Below are positions 2,283-23,842 of a DNA stretch of 24,072 nucleotides, piece after piece. Source of the stretch: Amoeboradix gromovi X-113 (taxonomy: Eukaryota; Fungi; Sanchytriomycota); contig JADGIF010000062.1 of the NCBI GenBank assembly GCA_018985225.1, positions 1 through 24,072 of the forward strand, in the 5' to 3' direction. Below the pieces are notes generated by a model. It was not told where the DNA came from, made no database searches, and was given only the letters and a program-made list of their open reading frames with translations. Numbering within the stretch: the first letter of the stretch is position 1; the number at the start of each line of letters is the position of its first letter. The position numbers and the translations under genes were made by a program.

Positions 2283-4475
2283 ATGCTCTCTACATTTACT
2301 TTTAATCTTGAATATTTAAAAAGCAACGCATTTGTTAGATACTTTATCGAAGAGAACCATGGAAACATATCTTCTAATGGCTGGCTACTCGTGGATAAGG
2401 ACAAGTCATCCATTGATGTTAACGATCAATTTAGAAGCAGGTATTTAAATATTCAGTTTTTGGCAGATGCAGCGCACCTAAAGCGCATTTTCAATGTTGA
2501 AAGGTATTTGGTGTTTGATCCTCTGGAAAGTCACGACACTTTGCAAGATGTTTGCTTCAGCGAACCATTAGAATTCAACTTCGAAGATATCGTAAACAAA
2601 AAGATATATCTTTCGTCCGGAATTGGAAGTAAACTAGCTGGAATTGACAAATTTTCTTCCATACTGCGACAAGGTGGTGCAAATGTCTTTACTTCGGTTT
2701 CTGATTTAAAGCAATTATCTGATATGGATTATTGTATATTCAACACCATAAGCAGCGAAGAATTCATCTATGCATATGAGCATAATATCACAATTGGCAA
2801 CACCTATTGGCTAATGACTCTATTGAGTCATGGATTCAGAAAACCGACTTCAATGCAATTTTGGATGCCATTTCCCCATAAAGATGCCAATTTTTCTAAT
2901 TTGGTGATATCAATCACCAACATTGAAGGCAAAGCTAGGGAGTATATCCAGAAGATTGTGAAACTACTTGGTGCTCAGTTTACCGGCCAACTCTCGAAAA
3001 ATTGTACACATCTCATTTGCGGTCAGCTGCAAGGTAACAAATATAATAAGGCATTACAGTGGGGAAATATACAACTCGTGAATTCATTATGGATTGAAGA
3101 TTGCTTTACTAACTGGGACTATTTGGATCCAAACTTGACTGCTTATCAGCATATTTCAAAAGTTATTAAACCTAACGAAAAGTTGGGTATTACTTCTTGC
3201 AATTTAAAAGTGATTAAAGAATCTTTAGAATTAGAGAAATCGAGACTAAGCAGATCTTTGAAATCCCAGAATAAATCTTTTGACAAATCCGTCAACAACG
3301 AGAATATAAACTCAGACTTGATCCCGGGCAAGCCGAATAGCCATGAACTGCCTGAAGCTACTCTATTAGGTTCCAGCTATTCAGTTCCAAAAAAAGCAAC
3401 ACCGGTCGAAGATAACCAGAAATCTGGAATCTGTAGAGATGAGCCAACAGGTGAAAACAAACCGCTGCCTGGCAAGCATTCGGAGCAGAAGATAGATCAT
3501 CCGGGAATTACTGCCCAGTCAATCACAAATGCTCTTGAAGATACCAGTAATTACTTCAACACTTGTGAAAAACCTGAAAGGATTAAAATTAAAGATAAAT
3601 TTACCACAAATCAGGACTTTAAAGCTAAATTAAACATTAAAAGTACCCAGTTGTTTCTAGAAAAGCCAAACTCTCAAACTCCAACAAGTTCTAAAATACT
3701 GGAGAAGGATATTTTAGACTTTAATAAAACTCTTGAAATATTGTCGCCAGAAGGGCTGAGATCTGTATTAGGTGAGTCTATGGCTCACAGCTCTGTTATA
3801 GCGGAGGTCGATGTCTACGATGATAAACAAAATAGTAAACCGGAGCCCATAATACCTATTGAAAGAAAAAGAACTGCATCTCAAAACTCGATGTCCAAGA
3901 AAAAGAGGTCCACAAGTAACAAATCTGTTTATCTGATGTTTACAAAAGGTGAGGCAACAAAATCACAATCAAAAACTATAAGCTCACTTGGATTTAGCAA
4001 ATGCAAGGATTTTAAGCAATGTACGCATCTGATTGCAGATTCAGTTAAAACTACTGAGAAGTTTTTATGTGCCGTAGGAAAAGGAAAACAAATAGTTACG
4101 CCCTTATGGATAAGTGCTAGCGGAAAGATAAATGATGTGGAGGATTGTGACAATTACAGGCCCAAATCTAATGTGTTCAAGGATTTGTGTCTATCGCAAT
4201 CTATTAGTCGAGCATTGGAACAGCCATTGTTTGAAAAAACCAAGTTTGTAATATCAAAATCAAAGAATTTACCACCAGCTGATGCTTTAACAAACATGAT
4301 AACTAGCAGTGGTGGCAAAGTTGTAAAGATGATTAAAGCAAATGAGATACTAAACAGCGTTTATGTTTGTGCAGATGAGAAGGAATCAGTGGCGATTAAA
4401 GAGCAATACAACGGAATAAAAGTTCTAACAAAAGAGGAGTTGTTCAGATGCATTCTTTTCCAAGAACTTCAATAA
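2283..4475 (+). CDS. Multi-BRCT DNA-damage scaffold, Rtt107/Brc1/PTIP-like, 730 aa
   Basis: N-terminal BRCTs including LVISITNIEGKAREYIQKIVKLLGAQFTGQLSKNCTHLIC...GNKYNKALQWG..LVNSLWIEDCF; a low-complexity middle with a basic patch (RKR...SKKKRS); a C-terminal tandem BRCT with CTHLIADSVKTTEKFLCAV...IVTPLWI and MITSSGGKV, typical of phospho-H2A-binding BRCT pairs. Confidence 0.8.
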   Translation: MLSTFTFNLEYLKSNAFVRYFIEENHGNISSNGWLLVDKDKSSIDVNDQFRSRYLNIQFLADAAHLKRIFNVERYLVFDPLESHDTLQDVCFSEPLEFNFEDIVNKKIYLSSGIGSKLAGIDKFSSILRQGGANVFTSVSDLKQLSDMDYCIFNTISSEEFIYAYEHNITIGNTYWLMTLLSHGFRKPTSMQFWMPFPHKDANFSNLVISITNIEGKAREYIQKIVKLLGAQFTGQLSKNCTHLICGQLQGNKYNKALQWGNIQLVNSLWIEDCFTNWDYLDPNLTAYQHISKVIKPNEKLGITSCNLKVIKESLELEKSRLSRSLKSQNKSFDKSVNNENINSDLIPGKPNSHELPEATLLGSSYSVPKKATPVEDNQKSGICRDEPTGENKPLPGKHSEQKIDHPGITAQSITNALEDTSNYFNTCEKPERIKIKDKFTTNQDFKAKLNIKSTQLFLEKPNSQTPTSSKILEKDILDFNKTLEILSPEGLRSVLGESMAHSSVIAEVDVYDDKQNSKPEPIIPIERKRTASQNSMSKKKRSTSNKSVYLMFTKGEATKSQSKTISSLGFSKCKDFKQCTHLIADSVKTTEKFLCAVGKGKQIVTPLWISASGKINDVEDCDNYRPKSNVFKDLCLSQSISRALEQPLFEKTKFVISKSKNLPPADALTNMITSSGGKVVKMIKANEILNSVYVCADEKESVAIKEQYNGIKVLTKEELFRCILFQELQ

Positions 4476-4476
4476 A
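4471..4476 (+). terminator. AATAAA polyadenylation signal overlapping the BRCT gene stop codon (representative of a recurring pattern)
   Basis: CAATAAAC contains the TAA stop at 4473-4475. The same overlap occurs at 9592-9597 (-) and 13350-13355 (+); close downstream copies occur at 259-264 (-), 4718-4723, 8189-8194, 13857-13862 (-) and 23844-23849. Confidence 0.6.
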
Positions 4477-4535
4477 CTCGCTTTAATAATTTTATTTTTC
4501 ATTTTTACAAAAATCCCCATTGAAACAGATAAGAA

Positions 4536-4712
4536 ATGTTTAAATCATTTTTGTCAATGAAAGTATATTCAAATGACGTGATTACACCTGTAAAGCCATT
4601 TCTAGTATCAGCAGTTGCTACCTGGCTTATTGCATATAAAGTGAGAGAAATGGGAATGGCTGCAGACTCAAAATCAGTTGAGCATACTGAGGATAATGTA
4701 GTAGGACATTGA
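4536..4712 (+). CDS. ATP18: Mitochondrial F1Fo ATP synthase subunit j (i/j, Atp18), 58 aa; absent from the supplied ORF track
   Basis: Hand translation: MFKSFLSMKVYSNDVITPVKPFLVSAVATWLIAYKVREMGMAADSKSVEHTEDNVVGH*. One TM segment; the pattern SFxxxKxYSxxVxxPxxPF-hydrophobic-KxRxxxM matches fungal Atp18 as I recall it (S. pombe SFFGLKRYSTPILKPMLPFF...KLRDAMM). AATAAA follows at 4718-4723. Confidence 0.78.
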   Translation: MFKSFLSMKVYSNDVITPVKPFLVSAVATWLIAYKVREMGMAADSKSVEHTEDNVVGH

Positions 4713-4809
4713 GAATCAATAAATATATGCTGTTTATTTCAGCGAAATGCCTTTATCTTGTTCAAGTTTTTAGCAAGACAATCTCCATAAAACAACTATC
4801 GTGCCAAGA

Positions 4810-7800
4810 ATGTCAGTATACTCAAAAGGTATGACGGCTAAGGTGAAAGATTCCTTGTATACAATAGTCGAGATTGAAAGCGAGTCTATTTCTTCTGTAG
4901 TGTACAAAGTGTCGTGCAACAATACAACTTATGCTTTGAAAAGCTGGAAAAACAAGGAAAAGTTTGTTTATAATGAAATACAAGCGTCAAAAAATGCTAG
5001 TAACAATCCCCATGTTGTAGAGTATGTGAATTCTACGATTATTCCTGTTAAATCTGACGTTCAAGGTTTACTCATTTTGGAGTATCTACCGGGAGGTACA
5101 CTCAAGTCATTCATTGAGAATCAAGAGTCTTATCTAAATGATCTATTAGTTTTGCAAACATTCACAAATCTTACTAGTGCCATCTCTTTTCTGCATTCCA
5201 TCAATCCTCCTATCTATCACCTAAATATCAATACTTCCAACATCATGCTAATTGACCCCAATGATCCCAAATCATTGAAATTGATTGATTTTGCTTTGTC
5301 TTCTACTTCTCCAATATACGTCGATAAATTAAAACCCACCCAAATCAAGAACTACATTCAGTATTTCACTAAAAACATGATCGTACAATTTTCTAGTCCT
5401 GAGATTCTAAACTTCAGATTTAATATCACTTATGCCTGTGATATTTGGTCATTGGGTTGCATCTTGTATAACTTACTCTTTTTGAAACATTGCTTTAACA
5501 CTGCCAATGAAGTCCTCTCTTCAGAATTTAGAATGTGCAATGATGTCAAGTATCCTCCGTTTTTCGATATTCTCCTTTCAAAGTTGCTTCTGAAAGACCC
5601 AAAATTAAGATTAAAAGCTGGACATGTTTTAAATGAGTGTTCTGATTATCTGAGTTCTCTTGTTGATGGTGGTTCTCATACACACAATGAAAATGATGCT
5701 AGCGATGTTGTTATCGCTGGCAAGGTAAAGCTACATGCCACCCATCTACTAGATATTCCTAACTTCAAATCAGTCAAGAAACCATTGCGCCATATCAACT
5801 TCCAGTTTCCATTAGAATGCTGTATATGTAACAACTCCGTTGTTTATACTATACCCATGGATGCTTCATTGCTTTGCAAGCACAACATTAAGGCTGATTT
5901 GGCTATTTATAATCCCGCGTCACATCTATTGATTACAACCGATGGTAGTGTAGTAGACGTTTACAATGTTAATTTAAAGCAACGTATATTGTCTCAATCG
6001 TTATCCAACGTTCAATTCATGTCCTGGCTAGATGATGACCTGATTGCCATCTTGACTATGGAAGTTGTATATCATTTCAATATTACTACAAACGAACTTA
6101 CAGAAATGGCTGGCATATTCTCTAGTGTTATGGAGCATCAAATCGTCTATTATGATGTTGATGACATCCACGATCCTAGTTGGTTGTTACTAACGTCACC
6201 TAATCCTGCAGATCCTCAGTTCGGTCAAATTCAACTACATTCTATGCTCAAGAGTGGCTCTCAAATTATTCCTGGTGAATTGGCTCGGTTAACTAATTCC
6301 AATAGTGACGTTTTGTTAATGTTGATTAACCGTGGCCAAACTCATTCTTATCTTCATATAGTTGCTGTAGTTCCTGGAAAACAACCCAGCAGTATCAAAC
6401 TGCCTATAAAGAATGAATCCATTATGACGCTGGATGTGCATGCAGATGATTGTTATATGAGCACAAATACTGGTCGTATCATAATTTACAATTTTATTGC
6501 AAAATCATTTCGATACAACTCAACTGTATTGAAATACGGTTTAATCAAGTCATTTATCAATGATGATGCTTACTACGGTATTACTGTCAATGGCAAGATT
6601 TTTAGTATAACAGAGAGTACAAGTGTAGAAAGCAGTGTAGCTAGTACATCTAGTACGGTAGCCGATACAGCCTCTAATACTTTGGATAGAACTGCAAGTG
6701 CACCAGACAGTTCGGTTAGAGGCGCAGCACAACGCAAATCAATTACTCCCGATCCGCGTAACAAGACCAAAGAGGGCGAAAAAGCCACAAGTATTCGTAG
6801 CAAATTAAACTCAAGTAGCACTCGTAACAGCCTTAAAAGCGTTCCAAGTAAATTGGAAGACACAGATGTCACAAAGTTTAATTCTTTGTTAACTAGAATA
6901 TCTGCTAATCAGGCGGTAGACGCGAATGAATCTGTTCTGTTTTGTAAATACGGCAACACATTAGGGCTTAGCCAACTAGTGTTTAGTTACATTAGTGAAA
7001 ACAAGTTGACTATTAGCGAGGAATTGGGTGATGAATTGATTAGAGTTGACAACAAGCCATTGGCATTAGAATGTTATCAGAAGTCTAATTCGCATGACAA
7101 AGTATGCAGGCTGATGGCTGATGACTCTAAATATTCGGAATTAATTGAGTATTTGGATCAAGTTGAATACAAACCAGTAGATGAATCTATATTACAAGAG
7201 TTGGTATTCGTTGATGAGGAATTGGCGTTCAAATACGGCCTCAAGTATTATAGCACAGAGCTAGAGGTAATAGAGAATATAAGTAGAATTATGATGGAGT
7301 CCAACGAGAATACGCTGGCTACATCCTTTCTTGTAAAGCATATCATAGATGCTGAAGAATACGGCTCACTGCAGACTAAACTGATCAAGTTAATCATGAA
7401 CGAAAATGTAAGCAAGGCCAATGAATTGCTGAAGAGTGAAAAGTACACAAAGTATGATAAATGGTCAACTAGCGTAGCTTGCATAGACGCTCAGTTGTAT
7501 GATACTGCTATATCTCTCTATCATAGCAGGGAGTTGATGTTCAATAAGAATGACATTCTCAGTAGTAATCCTATTTACCATGAGCTGGCCAATCATCTGT
7601 TTAACAAGGCCAATGCTGAGTACTGGCAAAAGGCTATAGATTTACTAGACACAAATCGATCTACAGAAACTAGAGACTACGCATTAGTAGACATTAGCGA
7701 AGACTCCAAATTCGGATGTTTAATGAGGTCTTTGCTGGACGGAAACAGCTTAAACAGCCAAGAATCTTTATTTAGCTTGTTAGAATCATTAATAAGCAAT

Positions 7801-8184
7801 AAAAAATTGTACTGGTTGTACCATCTACTAGATTTTGTTATGCAAGGTGAACTAAAGAAAAACAAAAGCATACAGACACTATACGCGTTATGTTTATTAT
7901 TAGCAGATCATAATGTTGAAGAAATAGAGAACCTAACGGAACTGGACTACTTGACTACGAGTATGGTAGCACAAAAAATGGGAAACAATGAGCTAGGATT
8001 TGACATATTGAATAGGTTTAAAGAGTATGCCAAGGCAACAGAATTGTTGATGGAGCTAGATATGACTCGAGCGCTGGATTATGCTAATGAAATAAACAAT
8101 GCAGAAGTCTGGGAGATGGTAGGAAAGAAGATTGTTATGGAAATGAGAAGTAATAAAGACCTGTATAGGATATTGAAAAGCTAG
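4810..8184 (+). CDS. Fusion protein: N-terminal NAK (Ark1/Prk1/AAK1)-like pseudokinase plus truncated, internally deleted clathrin heavy chain (first ATG at 4810; the ORF track starts at GTG 4801)
   Basis: Kinase (~4850-5650): YALK, NEI, LLILEYLPGGTL, LHSINPPIYHLNINTSNIML, KLIDFA, QFSSPEI, CDIWSLGCILYNLLF. Clathrin propeller (~5720-6618): IKADLAIYNPAS, VQFMSWLDDDLIAILTMEVVYHF, QIVYYD..WLLLT, GQIQLHS..SQIIPG, GITVNGKIFSI. Clathrin leg (~6870-8140): KLTISEELGD, LALECYQKSNSHDKV, GSLQTKLI, YTKYDK, RALDYANEINNAEVW. Confidence 0.88.
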   Translation: MSVYSKGMTAKVKDSLYTIVEIESESISSVVYKVSCNNTTYALKSWKNKEKFVYNEIQASKNASNNPHVVEYVNSTIIPVKSDVQGLLILEYLPGGTLKSFIENQESYLNDLLVLQTFTNLTSAISFLHSINPPIYHLNINTSNIMLIDPNDPKSLKLIDFALSSTSPIYVDKLKPTQIKNYIQYFTKNMIVQFSSPEILNFRFNITYACDIWSLGCILYNLLFLKHCFNTANEVLSSEFRMCNDVKYPPFFDILLSKLLLKDPKLRLKAGHVLNECSDYLSSLVDGGSHTHNENDASDVVIAGKVKLHATHLLDIPNFKSVKKPLRHINFQFPLECCICNNSVVYTIPMDASLLCKHNIKADLAIYNPASHLLITTDGSVVDVYNVNLKQRILSQSLSNVQFMSWLDDDLIAILTMEVVYHFNITTNELTEMAGIFSSVMEHQIVYYDVDDIHDPSWLLLTSPNPADPQFGQIQLHSMLKSGSQIIPGELARLTNSNSDVLLMLINRGQTHSYLHIVAVVPGKQPSSIKLPIKNESIMTLDVHADDCYMSTNTGRIIIYNFIAKSFRYNSTVLKYGLIKSFINDDAYYGITVNGKIFSITESTSVESSVASTSSTVADTASNTLDRTASAPDSSVRGAAQRKSITPDPRNKTKEGEKATSIRSKLNSSSTRNSLKSVPSKLEDTDVTKFNSLLTRISANQAVDANESVLFCKYGNTLGLSQLVFSYISENKLTISEELGDELIRVDNKPLALECYQKSNSHDKVCRLMADDSKYSELIEYLDQVEYKPVDESILQELVFVDEELAFKYGLKYYSTELEVIENISRIMMESNENTLATSFLVKHIIDAEEYGSLQTKLIKLIMNENVSKANELLKSEKYTKYDKWSTSVACIDAQLYDTAISLYHSRELMFNKNDILSSNPIYHELANHLFNKANAEYWQKAIDLLDTNRSTETRDYALVDISEDSKFGCLMRSLLDGNSLNSQESLFSLLESLISNKKLYWLYHLLDFVMQGELKKNKSIQTLYALCLLLADHNVEEIENLTELDYLTTSMVAQKMGNNELGFDILNRFKEYAKATELLMELDMTRALDYANEINNAEVWEMVGKKIVMEMRSNKDLYRILKS

Positions 8185-8231
8185 CATAAATAAAACAGAT
8201 TTACTGCATTCCTGGTGCTTTGATTTTCATA

Positions 8232-9464
8232 TTACTCGCAATCGAGGAAGCCAACAACTGACTGCTCAGCTAAAAGTTTTAGTTGCGATTCAGGATCACG
8301 ATGCAAAACAAACTCATCTTCATCACTGCTATTGTCGATTAAAAGATGGTTGGTCCACTCTCTAATTGACAACTGAACCATCGAGGAATCGGAACTTAAA
8401 AGTTGGTTGTCGAAATGATGCTTGGCCATGATAGCCTGCTGATGGTCTGTGTAGTTTATCGGAAGATTAAGAAGACGAAAAGCAGGGAAAAGTGGGGTGA
8501 ATCCAAGCAAATAATAGTCGGATTTTAGGAACGTTGTGGGAGTGTTCGTGCTGGAATTAGAAACGTATTTACATAGACCAGGTGGTACAGCTTCCAAGTG
8601 TTTGTTATGCAAAAGCATCAAAATTAAACGAGTAGCAACAAGATGATCTATCTGACTCGTTAGATTCAACAGCTGGATTAAAAGAGTATGATTATCTGGT
8701 AACACAGAGCAAATTAGGACAATCCAAGTTGACTCCTCTGGTGCTAACTGTTTAAAATTAGATTTAAAGATGTTAAGAAAGAATTCAGTATAAACAGATT
8801 TTAAATTTGTTTGATTCATATTGACTTTAATTAAATAAAGCAATGATTTTTCAATAGTGGATTGCTCAGGTGGAGTATCTTGAACATTTGCTCCTATCCT
8901 CTTTTCAAGAAACTTCTTTAAGTTGTTTCCAGCCATATCTGGAGCACGAATCCCATATAAACTACGAATATAGCGGTATAATGCTTCCAAGTCTTGATCT
9001 TGTAGAGTAGCAATCACTGCAATTTGGTGATGTACTAGCCCATTCTGGGGCCACAGTTCTTCAGCTTGTTGATAAGATTCTCTAGCCATAGTCATGTTTT
9101 CACTGATACACTGATCCCTATATCTAGCTAGGTCACCCATGTATACATAGCAATGAAATATAACTGGGAAGGTTATTTCATTCATTGGAAGTCTAGTAAG
9201 TACCAAGCTGAACCAGCCTACAATATAATTTATAAAGTTAGTGAACATATGCACTTGCAACTTGTTATCTTTTACCATTTTTCTTTTCTGCTGCACCGCT
9301 TTGTAGATTACCTGTTTCCATAATTTCTGCATCAACTGGTATTTGACATAGCTAGAAGTGTGCTGAATTGCAGCAAAATGAGCGTCTAGTGTGTCATCTA
9401 ATGATACTGAGCTTTTTAAATGCATCTGAAGAACAATCTGAATTTCTTGGGGATCGTTTTGCAT
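8232..9464 (-). CDS. Est1/Ebs1/SMG7-family 14-3-3-like TPR protein (telomerase or NMD factor), no PIN domain, 410 aa
   Basis: LWKQVIYKAV, CYVYMGDLARYR, ARESYQQAEELWPQNGLVHHQIAVIA (cf. A..YY..A..L.P..G.PYNQLAVL), EALYRYIRSL, AGNNLKKF and the DYYLLGFTPL motif. Confidence 0.88.
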   Translation of the reverse strand: MQNDPQEIQIVLQMHLKSSVSLDDTLDAHFAAIQHTSSYVKYQLMQKLWKQVIYKAVQQKRKMVKDNKLQVHMFTNFINYIVGWFSLVLTRLPMNEITFPVIFHCYVYMGDLARYRDQCISENMTMARESYQQAEELWPQNGLVHHQIAVIATLQDQDLEALYRYIRSLYGIRAPDMAGNNLKKFLEKRIGANVQDTPPEQSTIEKSLLYLIKVNMNQTNLKSVYTEFFLNIFKSNFKQLAPEESTWIVLICSVLPDNHTLLIQLLNLTSQIDHLVATRLILMLLHNKHLEAVPPGLCKYVSNSSTNTPTTFLKSDYYLLGFTPLFPAFRLLNLPINYTDHQQAIMAKHHFDNQLLSSDSSMVQLSIREWTNHLLIDNSSDEDEFVLHRDPESQLKLLAEQSVVGFLDCE

Positions 9465-9592: not shown

Positions 9593-10174
9593 TTATTTAA
9601 ATAAATGATGCCTCTCCACCATCTTTGATAACATATCAACTTCTAAGTTTACAATCTCTCCAACATTCTTGTAGTACAACGCTACATTCTCTTGTGTATG
9701 GGGAATCATCATTATTGAGAATTCGTTTATCCCCACTCGACAGGCTGTCAAGCTAACCCCATCTAAACATACAAACCCTTTCTCAATTATATATTTTGAT
9801 TTCTGTGTGTCTACTCTAAATTTATACCAAATCGAATTTTCTTCTATTTCTTTGTTTATTATTTCCACGGTGCAATCTACATGACCCTGCACGAAGTGTC
9901 CTCCCATTCTAGTAGTTGGTAACACAGATTTCTCCAAATTCACTTTATCATTAACCTTTAAACTTCCAAGGCAAGTGCATTTCATAGTTTCTGGAGTTGT
10001 ATTGATTTTAAATTTTTCATTTTGTTTCTCAACTACAGTCAAACATGTACCATTTACAGCTATACTGTCTCCGATTTTCACGTCTTCTAAATATTCATTA
10101 GTCGCAGCTATGGTATAAGAAAATCGTTCGATTTCAACTACAATACCCAAAAAATCCACTAACCCTGTAAACAT
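9593..10174 (-). CDS. RIB5: Riboflavin synthase (alpha chain), 193 aa
   Basis: N-terminal MFTG, GDSIAVNGTCLTV, VNLEKS, RMGGHFVQGHVD, KGFVCLDGVSLT, IPHTQE, VNLEVD: two lumazine-binding repeats. Confidence 0.97.
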   Translation of the reverse strand: MFTGLVDFLGIVVEIERFSYTIAATNEYLEDVKIGDSIAVNGTCLTVVEKQNEKFKINTTPETMKCTCLGSLKVNDKVNLEKSVLPTTRMGGHFVQGHVDCTVEIINKEIEENSIWYKFRVDTQKSKYIIEKGFVCLDGVSLTACRVGINEFSIMMIPHTQENVALYYKNVGEIVNLEVDMLSKMVERHHLFK

Positions 10175-10186
10175 CCCTGTTTAGAG

Positions 10187-13100
10187 ATGGATCTTTTTCA
10201 TCGGGAATCTGTTCTCTTGTTAGATGGTATCATGAATGAGTCACAGCTGAATCTTGCATACTTTGCGACCTTGTTTAAACTTGAATGGAATCCATTGCTG
10301 CGAGATACTCTAATGTCATTAAAAGGCATACTTGGTAAGGAGTTCACAGCCATGGAGGTAGTCAAAAAGAGTCAAAAAATGACAGTCTACACACTGTACA
10401 AGGTATTGCAAGTTATAGGTGAGCAGCACAACCATAGATTGCCTAACACTATCAGTGCGCATGATGAAAGTTTAATTTCTCATCTGGTCAGCGCTATGCT
10501 GATATCTACCAACGATGCGTTGTATGATGAATACTCAAATCCCATGCTGGTTGCTCTCTGTGCCCTCTTTCACGATGTAGGAAAACTTGGTACAATTCAA
10601 AGTGTTGGTCATCCTAAACACCAAATGACTGCTTTTTATTTCCACGCCGAAATGGGTTGTGGTATCATGAGTCTCTGTTATGTAGACAATGAATGGATTA
10701 CTCAGAATGAATGGAAATCTATGTGTTTAGCTATCAACTATCATATGTGTACTTACCATAGCTGTAAAGACGGATTAATGCAGTTGCATCAGAGGGCTGT
10801 TGTTGAAATACTCTCTACTCAGGCTAGGCAGCTGCTTTATCATTTATCTATAGGTGATATGTTTGGCAGATTTCCTGCTCAGGATTTGATTATGTGGAAG
10901 TCAACTCGCTCAAGTTTACTTTCAGATCATTCTGTTGAATCTGCAGAGTATTTTAGCAAGCACAGCAACAAAGGGATACTGATCCAAGTTATGGGCATGT
11001 CTGGTAGCGGCAAATCAACAATTTCCACTTTTATTAAACAAAACTTAATTGGAATGGATATATCTGACGATGACATAGTGTATATTCAGCGTGATTATTA
11101 TTTATGCCAAGTAGCTGCCGGTGTTGGTCAGCTAGAGATTTCTGATAATCCCTCCAGAGAGGAATATCACAAATTGCACGAAATATATAAATCCAATAAA
11201 TTGGCGGATGTAGTCAATAAGAGAATGAAGAACGACATACAAGTAGCGCTAATGCAGAACAAGATCGTTATTCTTGATACTGTAGCTATTTTGTTTCAAG
11301 CTGCTCAGTATATATTGCCAGATATAGCTGCTATAGCATTCAAGATTAATGTCTATGTTATTCGAAACAGTTTGCTGACTACTAGCGATGGAGACAGACT
11401 GGGACTACCCTTGAGCGAACAGATCAACATCCATGGAGAAAAATCACTGTTGTTTTGGATGCCCTCTGATTTCAAAAAGAGATACTCACAGGGACTATTT
11501 AGGCAACGACAAATGGTGGGCAACTTTTATAATGATGCTGGGATGGCTAAGGCGCTGATGAATAAAGATAGTCCAATGTTATCATTTGTAATTAAATGGG
11601 GATTTGAGTCAAATTTGGAGCCAATGTTTAAAGTAATCAAGCAGTTGATAAATAACCAAAGCGCTAACGGTTCTTTATATGGCTTTGATATAGATCTAGT
11701 TGAGCTTGTAAATCGATTGTATTCTAAATTTAATTTCAAGTTTATCATTGAATTCTTCCAAGGTTTGAATATCATGGCCAGTCAGCCATTGAAGGACACA
11801 GAATACGGCGAGAAGGTGATTGTAATAAAGTATAAAGAAAATTGTAGATTTTGGAAGGCCAAATGGGCACGGCAGGCTAGAGGGGCCGTGTTAATACTAC
11901 ATGGCAACAGGTGGTACTGCATCAAGTCCCTGCTGCAAAGAGGTGCTGAAGTTTTAACAGGTATTCATCAAGTCCATGGGGTGTCTGATAGCCAGGATTA
12001 TCATATTGGTAAATATGATCATTTAGATTCTAATCAGCAGGATACAATAGTTAAGTTCATGAATAAACAACCTATACAAGGTATATTATCCTGCAAAATA
12101 GATGGTAGCTTACTGGGTGTCACAATTATTCCTAAAAGTCATTTTCTATTTGATACTGCAGCTGCTGTAATTAGAAGAGCAAACATTCCAAGTCATTTGC
12201 GTATTCTGAAATATGCTATATCAAATTGTAGCTTCATTCCTATATTCAGTTCCCAGGGTACTGTAGTTTTTGGTACTTTTATGGAGGATTGGTACTTTAG
12301 TGCATTCTTAGTCGGGGTTTGTAATTTTCAGCCGCAATACTTAAAATCTCTGTTTTTACAGGATAAAACCATTGAAGAAGTAGTAGATATGCATTCAAAA
12401 GACATTTGTAATGAGTTGCAAGCGTTTCTTGATTTAAATGCGAGTTTAACTAAAAACAAGATATCCTGCCTAAGTTTTGAATCCTGCTGTCCCAATCGAC
12501 AAAGCGAATGGGGAGATGTACATACTGAACTAGCTTTGAGCTACAAAACATATATATGCAAGTTCCTTGGATGCTCCTTCGATCTGGGAGAAACCACTGG
12601 TAACTTTGTACCTCACATAAATATTAAACTGCCAAGTAGTTGGAAACAACCTACTGTATGGGATATTCAGCATACGGACCAAGTATCTAACATGGTATTA
12701 GATGTAGAACAAGTCATTTATGATAAAATGTCAATTAAGCAGTTTTATATAAAATATCCACCAAAGCACCAATCTGATGATTTTCTGGATTTTGAAGGAT
12801 TCGTGTTCTACAAACTGTTGGATAAAACTGTAGATTATGCTAAAATCAAGACGCTAGTTTATTATCATGCTCATAACCCAAACAAGAGGACAATAGATGG
12901 ATTATTGCACATTAGCGACGAAATGGCATCACACATCCCTAGTGTAGTACTAGTCAAATCATATTTTAGTACACTGCATCCTAGTTTAACAAGGGTACGA
13001 AATGATTTGTACACGGAAGTGACCGACAAATACTCCTTGTACATTGTTGAAATGAACTCCAAGGCCCAGTCTTCGTACTTGGGTCAACCGGTAGACACCA

Positions 13101-13354
13101 AAATCAAAATGATTATTCAAAACTCACCCTCTTTCTTATCCAAAATCAAGCAAACCTTTTCTGCACACTTTGAACACATGGAGCATGTCAATCCTTTATT
13201 TTTTAAACGACTGGTCATGAAGATGGCTATTTGGGAGCCTGATTTACTCAGTTTAAATGAATTAATTAGCACAAAAAATCAGATATTGTTTGACCTGTTT
13301 ATTGAAATATTGGACTCTCAGCAGTACTCTAAAGAAACGAATGATCAGCAATAA
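10187..13354 (+). CDS. Putative trifunctional RNA end-healing/sealing enzyme: HD phosphoesterase + P-loop polynucleotide kinase + T4 Rnl1-type ATP-dependent RNA ligase, 1055 aa
   Basis: HD: HDESLISH, ALFHDVGK (H129-D130), FYFHAEMG, AINYHM, GDMFGR. Kinase: GMSGSGKST (aa 270-278), YIQRD, IVILDTV. Ligase: IKY...WARQARG (R565), motif I KIDGSL (K637), LSFE (E765), KFLG, motif IV EGFVF (E870), motif V AKIKT..Y (K886/K888). Confidence 0.85.
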   Translation: MDLFHRESVLLLDGIMNESQLNLAYFATLFKLEWNPLLRDTLMSLKGILGKEFTAMEVVKKSQKMTVYTLYKVLQVIGEQHNHRLPNTISAHDESLISHLVSAMLISTNDALYDEYSNPMLVALCALFHDVGKLGTIQSVGHPKHQMTAFYFHAEMGCGIMSLCYVDNEWITQNEWKSMCLAINYHMCTYHSCKDGLMQLHQRAVVEILSTQARQLLYHLSIGDMFGRFPAQDLIMWKSTRSSLLSDHSVESAEYFSKHSNKGILIQVMGMSGSGKSTISTFIKQNLIGMDISDDDIVYIQRDYYLCQVAAGVGQLEISDNPSREEYHKLHEIYKSNKLADVVNKRMKNDIQVALMQNKIVILDTVAILFQAAQYILPDIAAIAFKINVYVIRNSLLTTSDGDRLGLPLSEQINIHGEKSLLFWMPSDFKKRYSQGLFRQRQMVGNFYNDAGMAKALMNKDSPMLSFVIKWGFESNLEPMFKVIKQLINNQSANGSLYGFDIDLVELVNRLYSKFNFKFIIEFFQGLNIMASQPLKDTEYGEKVIVIKYKENCRFWKAKWARQARGAVLILHGNRWYCIKSLLQRGAEVLTGIHQVHGVSDSQDYHIGKYDHLDSNQQDTIVKFMNKQPIQGILSCKIDGSLLGVTIIPKSHFLFDTAAAVIRRANIPSHLRILKYAISNCSFIPIFSSQGTVVFGTFMEDWYFSAFLVGVCNFQPQYLKSLFLQDKTIEEVVDMHSKDICNELQAFLDLNASLTKNKISCLSFESCCPNRQSEWGDVHTELALSYKTYICKFLGCSFDLGETTGNFVPHINIKLPSSWKQPTVWDIQHTDQVSNMVLDVEQVIYDKMSIKQFYIKYPPKHQSDDFLDFEGFVFYKLLDKTVDYAKIKTLVYYHAHNPNKRTIDGLLHISDEMASHIPSVVLVKSYFSTLHPSLTRVRNDLYTEVTDKYSLYIVEMNSKAQSSYLGQPVDTKIKMIIQNSPSFLSKIKQTFSAHFEHMEHVNPLFFKRLVMKMAIWEPDLLSLNELISTKNQILFDLFIEILDSQQYSKETNDQQ

Positions 13355-13872: not shown

Positions 13873-16800
13873 TTAAAAATATGGCACGTATTCCATTCCC
13901 AGCTCTGCTAACAGTATGGGGTTTGTGCTTGTAGATATCATCTCATCATTTTTTAGCTTCCCTAGCACACCAAACCTCTTGTCTATTTCTTTTGATTTTG
14001 ATTCTGGATCTTCAAAAGGCAAGTACAGTCTTAGATACTCCGCCTTGTCCATAAGTCCTCTTCCCATTATTATCATCATTTGTCTGTAATAACCCTGTAT
14101 CCCAATTGTAGTTATATACTCCTGTATAATTGGTGTTAACCTCATGTATATCGGAGAACTTATAGTTCTCTTGTTTTTAAATATGCTTGTTATACTAAAA
14201 ACTTTACCATTCACCACGCTCAGTTTAAAGTCATTAAGTTTTAATACATTCAAATCTAGCCCATACACCATGCTGTTAAGCATGCTATAGCTGTACGCAA
14301 ACACTCTTCTATACTCGTAGTATGCGCTAGCAACCAGTCTATTCATCAAATAGTCGCGAAGTGTATTTTGGTATTTGTTCACCAGAGTATTAAACTCACC
14401 CGCATCCTTGTATTCAGACAGCTGCCGCCCTTCAAGCAGGTCGCTCAAATATATGCTAGTAGGTATGTTACTCAATATTATACCGTCTTTTAGATACTCG
14501 CTATTAACTATTGGCATGTTGACCCTTCTCTTCTTGAACTGCAATGATTTGTTGACATGATAATTGGACCATGTAAACGTGCCTTGGCTAGTTCTAAATA
14601 TAGGGTACTCTACTTTCTGATTAACTATGTTGTAAACATAGGTTAAACCATCATCTGCCAATATTTTGATGTTTACAGACACGGTGCTGTTACTACTCAT
14701 TGTGCAGCCAATGAACTTTGATATTGTGCCATCACTGCTGTCGCATGGTAGCCTCATTGTGCTAAATGGAATGTAGTGTTCAAGAGATGGTGGAAGCGGG
14801 ATAGAAACTGGGGCACCGTCTAAATGCGTTGCATCGCTATCCACGTGCATCGCATCAATCTCGCCAAGTTCGACCAGTTTTTCATACACCATGCCCATTG
14901 TTTGAAACAATATTGGATGTATTGCTTTAAATTGTGGCAGTAATGCATTATCTTTTTGCTGTATTAAATGTACAAAAACAGTATTTGGATACAAATTGAA
15001 GAGCTTCAACAACAATTTAGACGCAAATTCGTTCAACGGACCATTGCATAAATAAAACAACTCAGCAATGTTACATTTGAAATGGCTTAGTTGTATAAAT
15101 TGAGGATTCAATAATTCACTTAGGCCTGATACAAACTGGTTAGTCGTTAACAACCATGTCAGACTAACTGCCTGTTTGTAAAGCACTTTGTTAGTAGTAC
15201 AGCTAAGAGCGTTAACTAGACATACAATACAGTTCTTTAGCACAGCATTATCCAGCAAATCAAGATGTCTGATATGATAATTAGCCCAACTTGACCAAGC
15301 TTTGTAGTAATCTTTATCAGTTTGGGTTGCATTCATATATGCCTCGTTTGCTTCATCCAATCTGTTATAATTGCATAAATAATGCCCCTTGTACACTAGG
15401 AATTCTGATTTATTTACACTTGTGAAATAGTGGGTGTTTGTAGTTTTGATCAACTCTAAACCATTTCCACTTGTAGTGTTACCATCTGCATTGTAGAGTT
15501 TAGCTTGCTCTCTTAGTTTTACAAATGCCTCACTTATTTCTATGTTTGGTAAACTGTAAACCATGTTGAGAGTATTTACACAATGCTCACTTAGTCCGTT
15601 TACTCTGTATATCTTCGCTAGCTTGTTAAACGACCAGGCTAGCTCATGGAATCCCTTAAATGCTAAACTGTTCTGACCATTAGGTCCGCTGTTTAACATT
15701 GATTGCATGTTTGGAATGTAGGTGCTGAATTTGCTGTTTATCAAGTCAAATGAATATTTGCGCAGTTTGATGAACTCACTCCACTCATCAACACTGTCAT
15801 GGTCATTTGGTATGAACTGCCTGAAATAGTGGCACTGTTGATTCAACACGCTAGATTGTTCTATAGCAGTGTTGACATCCACTATTTTGTTCAGTATACT
15901 GGTTATAGTATCAAATAGCAGACATTCTAAATATATTCTGCAATCATAGACTGACAATGCATTCCTATTAATACTGGATACGATGCTGGACTGTAAATTA
16001 GATGTCACATTATCCACAACAGATGCATTGACCGTGTTACCCATATAAGAGTGAATCAATTTAAATGCTGATATGATGCTGCCATCTTGAATCCCCAATG
16101 CGTTGCGCTGGTTAATTATGGTTTGCATTTGTTCATGCTGGCCTGCGCTATTGAAGTCTAGCAAATGGCAATTGCTGATATAATACAAATCGTGCCATTG
16201 CTCATGTTTACTAATCTCCTGTATCAAATCCCATTGCTGTAACTGCCTGCTGCACTCTAACCATGACTCCCTAATAAAAACTGATTCGTTATTACTCAGT
16301 GAATTAACATTCAACTGCTCTATTTGCAGTTGGGCATTAGTGTAATCTGACTGCTGCAATGAATGTATTATATTGATGTACGGCTTATTTAGTGGTTTGT
16401 GATACTGTAGCCCCAGCAGCAAATCGTAGTCCTTGTTCATCAGTAGTGCGTTGGAAAGTGCCAAGTGGTAGGTACTGCTGCTACTACCATAACCAACTAC
16501 AGGTAGCGCACGGTTAACTAGAAATGGTGGTAGCTCTATAGACGTATTACTTAAAGTATTAATCATATTAACACAGGTAGGATTGTTTGTTAAACAACTG
16601 GTAAATGCGTATTGCAACTGTATTTGCTGGCTTGAACTAAACTGATTCCATAGCGTAGGGAACATTATCTGAAATGTACCAGCAAAAGCTGTAATTATAT
16701 CTAGAATGCTATTAGTGTCTGATGCAATACTTTGTTTATTGTCCAAATGTATAGTATAGTCCCCTATAAAGTACAAATATATTATGAAGCCACTGGCTCT

Positions 16801-19800
16801 GTCCGCAACCACTCCGTCCCACGATTGCTTACCAATTAAGTAGTACATTCGACTAAATGAATTGTTAATTAGGTGCGACTCATAATAATTTATAAATTTG
16901 GATTTAATGTCAAAATTGCAATGACCAAAAGCACTCATAAAAACAGGTTCTAGCAACATGGTTAGTTCGGTATTCTTGTAGGTAGGATTGTTATAAATAT
17001 CAAAGACAGCATTATAATAAATAAATGAGAATGAATCTTCTGGAGTTGCTGCGTTTGCACTCGTATTAGCATTGCTTGCTTCCAAAAATAATTTAATCAA
17101 GTATCCCATTTCTTTAACTGACATTATACTTGTTTTACTAATTATAGCCTTAAAAAGCAAAGTGGATTCGCTGTTAGACTTGCTGAGTCTAATCAATCTG
17201 GTTAATGAATCGACAAACTTAAACCTAAGGGTACCAAGCATAGAGATCATTTTAAACAATAGCTCGGTAATAATCAACGTTTGATCAAACGAATACAAAT
17301 CACTGCTATACCATCCTGTTATAACATCATTATAGCAAGTGATTGTGAATTCAACAAAACCCTCGCACAGCTCTTTTTTAAATTGCAGTAACACATCAAT
17401 GCTGATAATAGCCATATATCTGTTATTCCTGGACAACTCAATAGCGATGTTAGCAACATGCTTGCAGAGTACGTCCCCAGCTTCTTCTCCTTCATTGCTG
17501 AAGTGCTGTGTTGACTTTAATACAGATTGCAGCAAGGTATGAATGTCATTATAACACGTAAAATCAGATTTGAGAACTAGTTCCAGTAGAGAACTAATAG
17601 TATTATGAGATTGTAGAGTCCAATGGTTATTCATGTGCAGTACATCTACTGATGTAATGACTAGCAAGTATTCAATAAACAACTTGTACGATACCATTGC
17701 TATTGGCATAATGTTAGTTGCATCTAGCAACACAACAATATCATTTAGCTGCAATAAAGGAGCATTTATGGTATTAATCAAAGAATTTAATCTATCGTTT
17801 AGCTTATTTAACCAATAAAATCTCTTAACCGCTGTACTGGTAGCGATGGCATGCATAAAACGGATCATCGCATTGACCATCACTCCTGTTGTAGGGATGC
17901 TTGTAGAGCTAGTGTAACAATCTGATAAAAATACAAACAGGTCCACAACAATACTTCTTAGTTCAATTCCTACCAGAGTAATCATCTTGTACAATGGGTT
18001 AACCAACAACTCATACAAACAGGTACCATCACTGTTAACAGTATTTAAATGCTGCAGAAACATTGGAGAATGCTGGATTATTAATTTATAAATGTTGACC
18101 ACAACGTGAGGAGTTAGTTCGTCTTTCAACAAACTAGATATTATGGCAATATATTCTGGAGGATTAGAAATGGCCGGGATATTCGGATTACTATTCGCAA
18201 CGCCTGTATCCATATGATTGGCAATGGCACCACCTGGACTTGAGGTTGCTGAATTACCAATGTCTACTTTGTTGTAATACTCCATCATTATAGCCATTGC
18301 TTGGTGTAGAACATCTACACACTCCATGATATTAAATGATTTCAGCATCAACGTAAATATAGAGGAGATGTATTGCCTAGGAATGTCATATTGCTTTAAG
18401 CAAAGAGCACATGTTAATGCTAATTCCCCTTTGAGCTTGTACAGCGATTCTTCTTTTTTAAACAATTGGAAGGCAAATTTAATGATCAACCTGCTGGTCC
18501 CCATCTTGCTTAACAATAAGGGAGACTTTATGACAAAATATTGAGTTATTTTCAACCAGCAGTACAGCACGTCCATATTGATATCAGTAGTACTGGTGTC
18601 CCAGATAACAGATTTGGCAGTATTTACCAGTTGAGTGGTTGGATTGTTTAAATGGTCCAGCAAAGGAATTAAAAAAAGGTCAAAGTATACTCTGTTTAAC
18701 GGCGATGTCAAAAATTTGATGATTGTGTTGGATATCAATATATCAGCTGCTGTACAAAGTGAATCGCTTGATAAGTTGGAGTCCGCCGGTACAGGTGAGT
18801 TCTGAGTTGTTACCATGTCTTTTAACATCAACTCAATGTATTCGTTTACGTTTATCAAGTATTCATAATAATCAGCACAGTCGTCATTGAAAAGCACATG
18901 TGCTGTAGTGGGAAGTTTATTAAACATCTTCTTGATTATTTCTAGCGTGAATGAGCCGTATAAATGAATAATTTCACTATAGTAGCATAAATAGTTGATA
19001 GGTTTAACTGTGTTCTTTAATAAGCAGCCGATGCTCTGCAATGAGCATACAGTAAACAAGTTACTGTTCAGACCCAGTATGTGAGCGGAGTATAGTATTC
19101 TAGTATAGTTGTACATTTTAAGAGAGTTGAAGTCATTAATTATTTCTTTCAATCCTATTGTTTTACTACTCAAAAACTCATTCAACACCAAAGTGTTTTT
19201 AAAATATCTAACGCAATACAAGATAACATCTACATGTCCAATATTATCTATGTGCTCACACAAAACATCACTTACTACTACGTAGTACTTCGTAAACATT
19301 AAATCTAAACAGGGCAATATCGGTAAATGCTGTATGTTACTACGCTGCGATAGAGTGCAGTAATATTGTACCATCAAGAATATACATTGCTTCGGGTCTT
19401 CTAAAGGGCATCTGTATAGAGCATCGAAAGAAGCATCCATTATGCCCAATTCTCTGTTGATGCTAAGACTAGTAGTGCTATTAAAAACTCTGTCTAAAAC
19501 AGTGTAGATGGTACTAGAGTAATCTGATTTTGTCATGTTTTGAGGGAACAATTCAATGATCCGAGCAATTCCGCCACTAGAACTATGCGATGCATTTTTA
19601 GACTGAAATGTTAACTGAGGTTTAAGTGCTTCTTTAATATGCGGTCTAGTCAGGTTGTCATGCTGTAAAACATATGGCCTAATCAGTTTTAATTGTTCGA
19701 ATGCCATCGTGGCTATCGAGTGGTCATGGCTGAATATAAGATTTATAGAGCATATCAATATAGGCTTATTAATTAGCAATGGATAATACTTTGGATATTT

Positions 19801-22797: not shown

Positions 22798-22948
22798 TGA
22801 AACGAGTTTTAAACCCCAGACAACTTGAAGATGCAAAAACAATTGTTTCGATTTTACACTAGGTCAAATAACACTAGTTGAACTTTGATTCGCAATTCTA
22901 TGTTTTAAATGTAGTTGTTCCCAAGATTGTCGACTTTGAGGAGGAAAC

Positions 22949-23842
22949 ATGAAAACTGTTCAGTTGTATTATGCAACTTGGTCAAAGCCATCAATGAATC
23001 TTTTAAAGGTAGTTGACATTTGGAAAAAAAAATATGAAAACATATCATTTGAATGCATCGATGTCGATGATGAGGATATTGACGTTGCGGGAGTACCTAC
23101 ATTAAAGATGACGGACGCTAAACAAACCAAAGAATATGTTGGCGCCAATGCTCACCTAATTACCAAAATGTTGGACCAACTTGACCTGTCAGAAGACTCT
23201 ATTCCTACAAATAAAGATGAGCCATATAATGAGGCTGTACTGAAGGAACTGGTAAATTCAGCGCCTATCATGATATTTATCAAAGGCACTCCTGCGCAGC
23301 CTAAATGTAAGTTTACTCGAGAGCTGTTGGATATATTTATTAATATAAATGTGCGATTTTCATATTTCAACATATTGTCAAATGAATATGTAAGATTACA
23401 CATGAAGGAATATGCGCAGTGGCCAACTTTTCCACAGGTATGGCTCCATTCGGAGTTTATCGGTGGTCTCGAAATCATCAAAGAGCTTAGAGAATCGAAC
23501 GAATTGTTGTCACTACTCAAGGAACACATATCAGAAACTACGGAAGACAAATGCAACAGGCTAATAAATCAAACAAAGGTCATGATATTTATTAAGGGTT
23601 CGCCTACAGAACCACAATGTGGATTTTCAAGAACTTTGGTTAACTTGTTAAATAGCAACAACATAGACTTTGGATATTTTGATATTTTGAAAGACGAAAA
23701 TGTGCGCCAAACGTTGAAGAATATTCAAGACTGGCCGACTTATCCAATGCTTTTTGTAAGAGGCGAACTAATGGGAGGACTGGATATTGTGAAGGAAATG
23801 CTAGATGGAGAGCTCCAAGACATAATTAGGCAAGAGGTATGA
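22949..23842 (+). CDS. GRX4: Multidomain monothiol glutaredoxin (Grx3/Grx4/GLRX3-PICOT type): Trx-like domain plus two Grx domains, 297 aa
   Basis: Trx-like YYATWSKPS...VAGVPTL; Grx1 PIMIFIKGTPAQPKCKFTR...WPTFPQVWLHSEFIGGLEII; Grx2 VMIFIKGSPTEPQCGFSR...DWPTYPMLFVRGELMGGLDIVKEM. Confidence 0.93.
   Translation: MKTVQLYYATWSKPSMNLLKVVDIWKKKYENISFECIDVDDEDIDVAGVPTLKMTDAKQTKEYVGANAHLITKMLDQLDLSEDSIPTNKDEPYNEAVLKELVNSAPIMIFIKGTPAQPKCKFTRELLDIFININVRFSYFNILSNEYVRLHMKEYAQWPTFPQVWLHSEFIGGLEIIKELRESNELLSLLKEHISETTEDKCNRLINQTKVMIFIKGSPTEPQCGFSRTLVNLLNSNNIDFGYFDILKDENVRQTLKNIQDWPTYPMLFVRGELMGGLDIVKEMLDGELQDIIRQEV

Follow-up and report, generated by a model that had tools for sequence, protein, structure and literature searches.

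The closest described counterparts of the gene considered here are the clathrin heavy chains (CHC; CHC17/Chc1 and CHC22) and the kinases of the NAK family (AAK1, BIKE, GAK, and Ark1/Prk1), whose kinase domains come with a tail of clathrin-binding motifs or with PTEN/J domains. AAK1 is stimulated by clathrin (PMC4780864), and in trypanosomes a NAK-derived pseudokinase affects cargo uptake (PMC10952953). In the sanchytrid fungus Amoeboradix gromovi X-113, a NAK-like kinase is instead joined to clathrin itself: within the 24,072 nucleotides analyzed (the window: contig JADGIF010000062.1 of assembly GCA_018985225.1, positions 1 to 24,072 of the forward strand, ~36% GC), a single unbroken open reading frame (ORF) on the + strand, from the ATG at 4810 to the TAG at 8184, encodes a 1,124-aa fusion of a NAK-type kinase domain and a shortened CHC. 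The fusion resembles the trypanosome protein, AAK1L1, as a NAK-derived putative pseudokinase; however, AAK1L1, for which a cargo-uptake role is known, is not joined to clathrin and belongs to cells without AP-2 (PMC10952953), whereas A. gromovi has mu2.

Like CHC17/Chc1 and CHC22, the fusion has a seven-bladed propeller, an ankle zigzag, one distal-leg repeat, and an arrestin-box groove. It differs from them in lacking CHC residues ~633-935/990 and everything past ~1120, in the loss of the W box, in an altered clathrin box, in the added N-terminal kinase, and, in sanchytrid members of its family, in a disordered segment that replaces the linker helices. Unlike AAK1, BIKE, GAK, and Ark1/Prk1, the A. 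gromovi copy lacks the catalytic Asp, the HRD Arg, the catalytic-loop Lys, and the DFG Gly. The HOPS/CORVET subunits VPS11, VPS16, VPS18, and VPS41 also combine a propeller with a short helical solenoid and form no triskelion, but these are feature-level look-alikes, and by its sequence the fusion plainly descends from CHC rather than from any VPS gene. Another clathrin-derived fragment outside the triskelion is CLHC1 (clathrin heavy chain linker domain-containing 1), which has neither propeller nor kinase, and the CLTC-ALK fusions of tumors, which are somatic rearrangements with a C-terminal tyrosine kinase, likewise join clathrin to a kinase; neither is homologous to the fusion as an architecture. 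An Iris pallida protein (P0021, KAJ6850541.1) with a CHC fragment and a C-terminal kinase was set aside as a precedent, since the order is opposite and it is probably a merged gene model. The kinase-clathrin architecture was not found described in Pfam, in the PDB, or in the literature searched, whose coverage leaves out most subscription journals, and no ESM Atlas cluster (clusters of at least 50 only) has it. Database entries of the family members read "hypothetical protein" or "clathrin heavy chain". The fusion and its relatives form a distinct, undescribed family clearly derived from CHC and NAK parts, in agreement with the original prediction, which was made from the letters of the DNA and knew of no such protein.

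A kinase and a mini-clathrin in one chain

The joining of kinase and clathrin in one ORF is confirmed and conserved. Pfam places Pkinase at aa 29-275 (E = 1.6e-23) and the Clathrin repeat PF00637 in three stretches (E = 1.4e-17), with no match to Clathrin_propel in the same scan; the best PDB sequence match is CHC (E = 1.6e-30), and the best kinases there are GAK, AAK1, and BIKE. An AlphaFold model built from 57 aligned sequences (mean predicted local distance difference test score [pLDDT] of 86) is laid out as kinase (aa 1-286), linker (287-303), propeller (305-603), disorder (607-679), and helical zigzag (684-1123), the relative placement of the domains being uncertain at a predicted template modeling score (pTM) of 0.53. 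Searched with Foldseek, this model matches AAK1 at a root mean square deviation of ~2 Å and the clathrin terminal domain at ~3.4 Å. Sequence, model, and fold agree on a seven-bladed N-terminal propeller homologous to the terminal domain of CHC.

When mapped with a profile built from 24 canonical CHCs, every family member aligns with CHC ~15-632 and then with ~935/990-1118, and nothing aligns past ~1120; the family profile in turn matches PDB CHC at 46-628 and 953-1116 (E = 2.6e-98). An internal deletion of 300-350 residues (CHC ~633 to ~935-990) is common to all family members, and the knee, proximal leg, light-chain region, and trimerization domain are missing from all complete ones, the light-chain binding region being CHC 1267-1522 (PMC8712872). 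The last repeat motif of the fusion (aa 1087-1101) aligns with CHC ~1094-1112, and family-specific terminal helices are present in all members. PF00637 matches number two in the fusion vs. seven in the normal CHC of the same genome, and each of three defining CHC features (full leg, light-chain region, and trimerization domain) is absent. Because the known cage-building regions are lost, we infer that the fusion does not trimerize as clathrin does; it would be unable to form triskelia or a normal lattice edge, and a monomeric state would follow from the missing trimerization domain. The original prediction was therefore right about a NAK-like kinase with a clathrin propeller and leg in one ORF, an end near CHC ~1110, and the absence of the proximal leg, light-chain site, and trimerization domain. 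It had taken the chain to be simply cut short, overlooking the internal deletion. A hidden 3' extension of the gene is ruled out, as all orthologues end alike and the convergent next gene, on the opposite strand, ends 47 nt downstream.

Table 1. Features of the kinase-clathrin fusion gene, in window positions
Feature	Position	Strand	Basis
Kinase-clathrin fusion ORF, NAK-type predicted pseudokinase + mini-CHC	4810..8184	+	ORF, Pfam, PDB search, reassembly, model
NAK-family kinase domain, aa 1-286	4810..5667	+	Pfam, PDB search, profile, model
Degenerate catalytic loop without HRD Asp	5218..5241	+	motif reading
Flexible kinase-propeller linker, aa 287-303 at pLDDT <50, longer in orthologues	5668..5721	+	model, alignment
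Complete clathrin terminal-domain beta-propeller, aa 305-603, ~CHC 8-330	5722..6618	+	profile, model, Foldseek
Altered clathrin-box groove: Q89 equivalent Asp, K96 kept, K98 Arg	5950..5988	+	alignment
Conserved arrestin-box residues (equivalents of CHC W164, L183, S185, R/K188, S191, Q192, I194)	6181..6270	+	alignment
Disordered segment replacing CHC linker helices, Ser/Thr-rich (36%), poorly conserved	6628..6846	+	model, selection scan
Ankle helical zigzag, aa 684-906, to ~CHC 632	6859..7527	+	profile, model
C-terminal zigzag, ~CHC 935/990-1118 past the internal deletion, with family-specific capping helices at its end	7561..8181	+	profile, model

The kinase domain retains beta3 Lys44 and alphaC Glu56. 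Its glycine-rich loop is degenerate, with 0 glycines, its catalytic loop reads HLNINTSN (the catalytic Asp replaced by Asn139 and the Lys by Asn141), the HRD Arg is also gone, and DFG has become DFA; of the residues looked for in an active kinase (Asp, loop Lys, DFG, Gly loop, and the Lys-Glu pair), only Lys44/Glu56 are present. Because the catalytic loop is degenerate and lacks the HRD Asp, the A. gromovi domain is a predicted pseudokinase, catalytically dead. A profile of the family kinases gives AAK1, GAK, and BIKE 124-108 bits and no other kinase more than 72.5, and the top library kinases have the NAK activation segment. The C-terminal helix of the activation segment is a NAK-specific feature (PMC4780864); such a helix is modeled at aa 176-189, from a folding alignment that included NAKs, and the DFG-to-APE spacing is long. 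The closest homology is to AAK1/BIKE/GAK/Ark1-Prk1, and it is weaker for the domain of Paraphysoderma (see below) taken alone, for which the N-terminal 720 aa folded at a pLDDT of 51, too low to judge a NAK fold.

As the original prediction had suggested looking for, the host genome (10.55 Mb, 1,319 contigs) encodes a separate full-length CHC (contig C218; seven Pfam repeats, 21% identical to the fusion) and one intact Ark1/Prk1-type kinase (contig C389), and the fusion is therefore an extra gene, not a replacement. The genome also encodes one epsin and a mu2 with the NAK target motif ITIQATG (human, ITSQVTG). A search of it for a light chain gave no match and was uninformative. In the normal CHC gene, an apparent 19-nt GT-AG intron (~7134-7152 of locus L003, from contig C218), read frame by frame, lies just before the last helix, and the frame 3' of it gives the expected end plus a Gln/Gly/Tyr repeat tail.

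Relatives, history, and selection

Family members were collected by a profile search of 1.84 billion representatives plus follow-ups, and among the best 150 matches listed, none lay outside Blastocladiomycota and sanchytrid-like genomes. The nearest named relative of the A. gromovi fusion is from Sanchytrium tribonematis, recorded as two ORFs on one Sanchytrium contig (P0015 and P0016), the first of which joins kinase and propeller. Two members from one metagenome, P0014 (1,146 aa) and P0163 (1,150 aa), are intronless single ORFs 40-43% identical to the A. gromovi fusion, and that of Paraphysoderma sedebokerense (P0017, KAI9140412.1; 1,268 aa, ~27% identical) is a single chain as well, encoded by a gene with short GT-AG introns in which a single exon runs on from the C-lobe of the kinase to take in the first strand of the propeller. 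Blastocladiella emersonii (P0019, KAI9184543.1) and Sorochytrium milnesiophthora (P0085, KAL7746292.1) have the same mini-clathrin at loci without a kinase match. The same kinase-propeller junction recurs in five taxa, and an architecture search in relatives, proposed at the outset, yielded single-chain orthologues in P0014, P0163, and Paraphysoderma; the neighboring genes differ between the loci. Because two blastoclads have the clathrin part without a kinase, the mini-clathrin is the conserved core of the family.

A JGI metagenome scan for related loci found none. Two word-based searches, one using the alignment of the family and the other the propeller of Blastocladiella, gave 0 new members; as the former also missed known members, they lend no support to a lack of copies in Allomyces, Catenaria, or chytrids. 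A second metagenomic copy of P0163 (L026) is split by a 1-nt deletion relative to a 99.97% identical intact contig; an intron as the cause of this break was rejected. The assemblies ERZ27314334 (L027, L031) and ERZ28573637 (L026) in ENA represent at least two further gene-dense sanchytrid-like genomes, with contigs of 19-54 kb, which are useful for sampling the phylum.

The state of the kinase varies among these members. In P0014, the catalytic Asp is lost, and the alphaC Glu too, whereas the kinases of Sanchytrium, P0163, and Paraphysoderma retain the catalytic Asp, beta3 Lys, alphaC Glu, and DFG. The label "pseudokinase" attached to the gene beforehand is right for A. gromovi and suits P0014; as a family-wide label it is not established, given the three members that keep these residues.

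In the clathrin tree, the six members form one clade (100/100), divided into sanchytrids vs. Paraphysoderma + (Blastocladiella, Sorochytrium), a species-like topology. Among the CHCs, a grouping of the family with the normal CHC of A. gromovi is not rejected (approximately unbiased [AU] test, p = 0.46). The kinase tree places the sanchytrid domains inside the NAKs and draws the long Paraphysoderma branch towards the outgroup; without the outgroup, Paraphysoderma joins the sanchytrid domains (97/96), as long branches meeting, and monophyly of the Paraphysoderma and sanchytrid kinases is not rejected (AU p = 0.445). Because the kinase is present in both sanchytrids and Paraphysoderma, the simplest history would be a single fusion with a single later loss.

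All folded domains of the fusion are under purifying selection, judged by a substitution analysis, which the original prediction had listed among its checks. Across the three intronless orthologues, the proportion of synonymous differences (pS) is saturated at 0.72-0.84, and that of nonsynonymous differences (pN) is 0.23-0.45 in the kinase, propeller, ankle, and C-terminal unit, with little constraint on the disordered loop. The fusion evolves faster than CPSF1 (61-74% identity between the same genomes) yet is clearly maintained.

Proposed adaptor docking and competing readings

Adaptor sites on the propeller were compared using the residue lists of PMC5182127. At the arrestin box, the identity of the family to the canonical consensus is 0.67, as against 0.68 among canonical CHCs and 0.27 at conservation-matched sites, and the equivalent of V190 is Gly in all family members. 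The W box is lost (0.03). The clathrin box is at background identity, with Q89 mostly Asp, L82 mostly Thr, and K96/K98 still basic; in the A. gromovi copy, the L82 equivalent, just upstream of the groove listed in Table 1, is Thr. The Royle box is poorly conserved, in an alignment that is uncertain there. Judged by these alignments, the arrestin box would be the only conserved adaptor site on the family propeller, the site that the yeast epsin Ent2 prefers (PMC11543927). The role of a general adaptor decoy, one of those proposed beforehand, is limited to this one retained site.

With a probability that we put at about 0.45, the fusion is a functional, lineage-specific CHC paralogue that acts as a cage-incompetent, adaptor-docking regulator, its arrestin-box groove bringing the NAK domain to a coat adaptor. 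It would go back to the common ancestor of Blastocladiomycota and Sanchytriomycota, in which a CHC gene would have been duplicated and one copy shortened both internally and at its C-terminal end, with the NAK domain fused probably at that time. The one conserved groove of the propeller would bind a peptide of the clathrin-box-like or arrestin-box type from a coat adaptor (candidates being epsin, the AP-2/AP-1 beta hinge, and the AP180 type), which would place the NAK domain on adaptors independently of a clathrin lattice, the usual recruiter and stimulator of AAK1. Ancestrally, mu2, the NAK site of which is conserved in the genome, may have been among the adaptor targets that the kinase phosphorylated; in A. 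gromovi, the dead domain would bind or shield the substrate, and in Blastocladiella and Sorochytrium the domain would have been dropped. The fusion would then control the place and time at which true clathrin takes over from adaptors and would not build a cage itself.

Several points weigh against this proposal. The arrestin-box conservation is a pointer, not proof, and the resampling test overstates its significance because the residues adjoin on two strands and are partly structural. Because the HRD Arg and the catalytic-loop Lys are missing from all family kinases and the Gly loop is degenerate in those of sanchytrids, even the Asp-retaining kinases may be inactive. The kinase was dropped in two species and is dispensable there, and a single origin of the fusion is plausible, not proven, given the long branch of the Paraphysoderma kinase.

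The persistence of the clathrin part without the kinase in two blastoclads fits a possible, if rather doubtful, role as a building block of some novel coat or tether confined to this lineage, in which a propeller and short alpha-solenoid of HOPS/CORVET or COPI size and plan would pair through the conserved C-terminal solenoid end at a compartment special to these fungi, the kinase being an appended scaffold. Between P0014 and P0163, the C-terminal unit is more conserved than any other region (67% identity), it carries the terminal helices peculiar to the family, and the ESM Atlas feature matches that come after clathrin are VPS11/18/16/41; the selectively retained groove for adaptor peptides, however, points to the clathrin-adaptor system. 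Joining the edge of a normal clathrin lattice by ankle and distal-leg contacts, and so halting its growth as a cap or terminator, is an unlikely function. The ankle and the repeat at ~CHC 990-1118 are retained and a normal CHC is present as a possible partner, but with 300-350 residues deleted, the propeller and the distal leg are out of register along the leg, which weakens this suggestion of the original prediction; the proximal leg and tripod, where clathrin makes its main assembly contacts, are absent, and the fusion is only 21% identical to the normal CHC of the same cell.

We regard as improbable a microtubule, spindle, or kinetosome role of the propeller and ankle, as in the TACC3-ch-TOG-clathrin complex. 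The retained block to CHC ~632 covers the propeller-ankle fragment of clathrin that binds TACC3 (PMC5897774), and sanchytrids have very long kinetosomes (PMC8371127); however, of the eight TACC3-contact residues tested, the family as a whole conserves just L476 and Y504 (D455, S477, L480, R481, L503, and K507 are not conserved), whereas the normal CHC of A. gromovi retains 8/8. That the fusion is a misassembly, a chance read-through, or a decaying pseudogene, as the single-cell origin of the genome, the frameshift in L026, and the two-ORF Sanchytrium record might suggest, is largely refuted and scarcely credible, given that the L026 break is a 1-nt deletion, the junction is shared by five taxa, the domains are under purifying selection, and one Logan reassembly contig spans window positions 4300-8800 with 0 differences and 0 joints (from the one run in which this DNA turned up, which is the probable source, so that its DNA is not independent; the locus turned up in no RNA run).

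Neighboring genes and biological meaning

On the - strand of the window are a tetratricopeptide repeat (TPR) protein resembling, by eye, IFT70/TTC30 (295-2040), an Est1/SMG-like protein (8232-9464), riboflavin synthase (9593-10174), and a Tra1/TRRAP-like protein (13873-22842) of 2,989 aa, short for a type usually ~3,700-3,800 aa long. On the + strand are an Rtt107/PTIP-like BRCT protein (2283-4475) and, between it and the fusion, a 58-aa ORF (4536-4712) with a weak, sub-cut-off match to ATP synthase subunit j (PF04911, E = 0.0055). A monothiol glutaredoxin (22949-23842, +) has one thioredoxin and two glutaredoxin domains, the plan of animal GLRX3, yeasts having one glutaredoxin domain. The intronless 1,055-aa protein at 10187-13354 (+) has HD-like and P-loop kinase-like regions (sub-threshold Pfam only) and matches phage family PHROG 6931 (E = 3e-17), while its C-terminal 650 aa fall outside any assigned domain; it may be an enzyme derived from a virus or a bacterium and resembling polynucleotide kinases or RNA-repair proteins. 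The neighbors at 295-2040, 2283-4475, 8232-9464, and 9593-10174 showed neither a functional link to the fusion nor synteny in relatives.

CHC is among the most structurally invariant of eukaryotic proteins, and a paralogue retained in two fungal phyla without cage assembly shows that clathrin can be repurposed. The fusion family offers a natural construct for studying the arrestin box alone, clathrin without trimerization, and the stimulation of AAK1-type kinases by clathrin, together with a graded series of kinases that are possibly active, dead, or lost. It is testable because Blastocladiella and Paraphysoderma are culturable, and it is a candidate for a molecular trait common to the clade of Blastocladiomycota and Sanchytriomycota. 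The species that retain the fusion kinase have amoeboid zoospores (PMC8371127), an association that, with two lineages, is only a lead. Tentatively, and at some stretch, the family might be the first natural, evolutionarily stable clathrin derivative wholly off the triskelion and form the core of a hitherto undescribed system, a coat or a gate for adaptors, in Blastocladiomycota and Sanchytriomycota. This system would have a NAK domain of its own, active in certain species and inactive in the rest, and might be linked to the way of life of the kinase-bearing lineages as algal parasites with amoeboid zoospores. The family may represent a new kind of membrane-traffic regulator in early fungi that parasitize algae.

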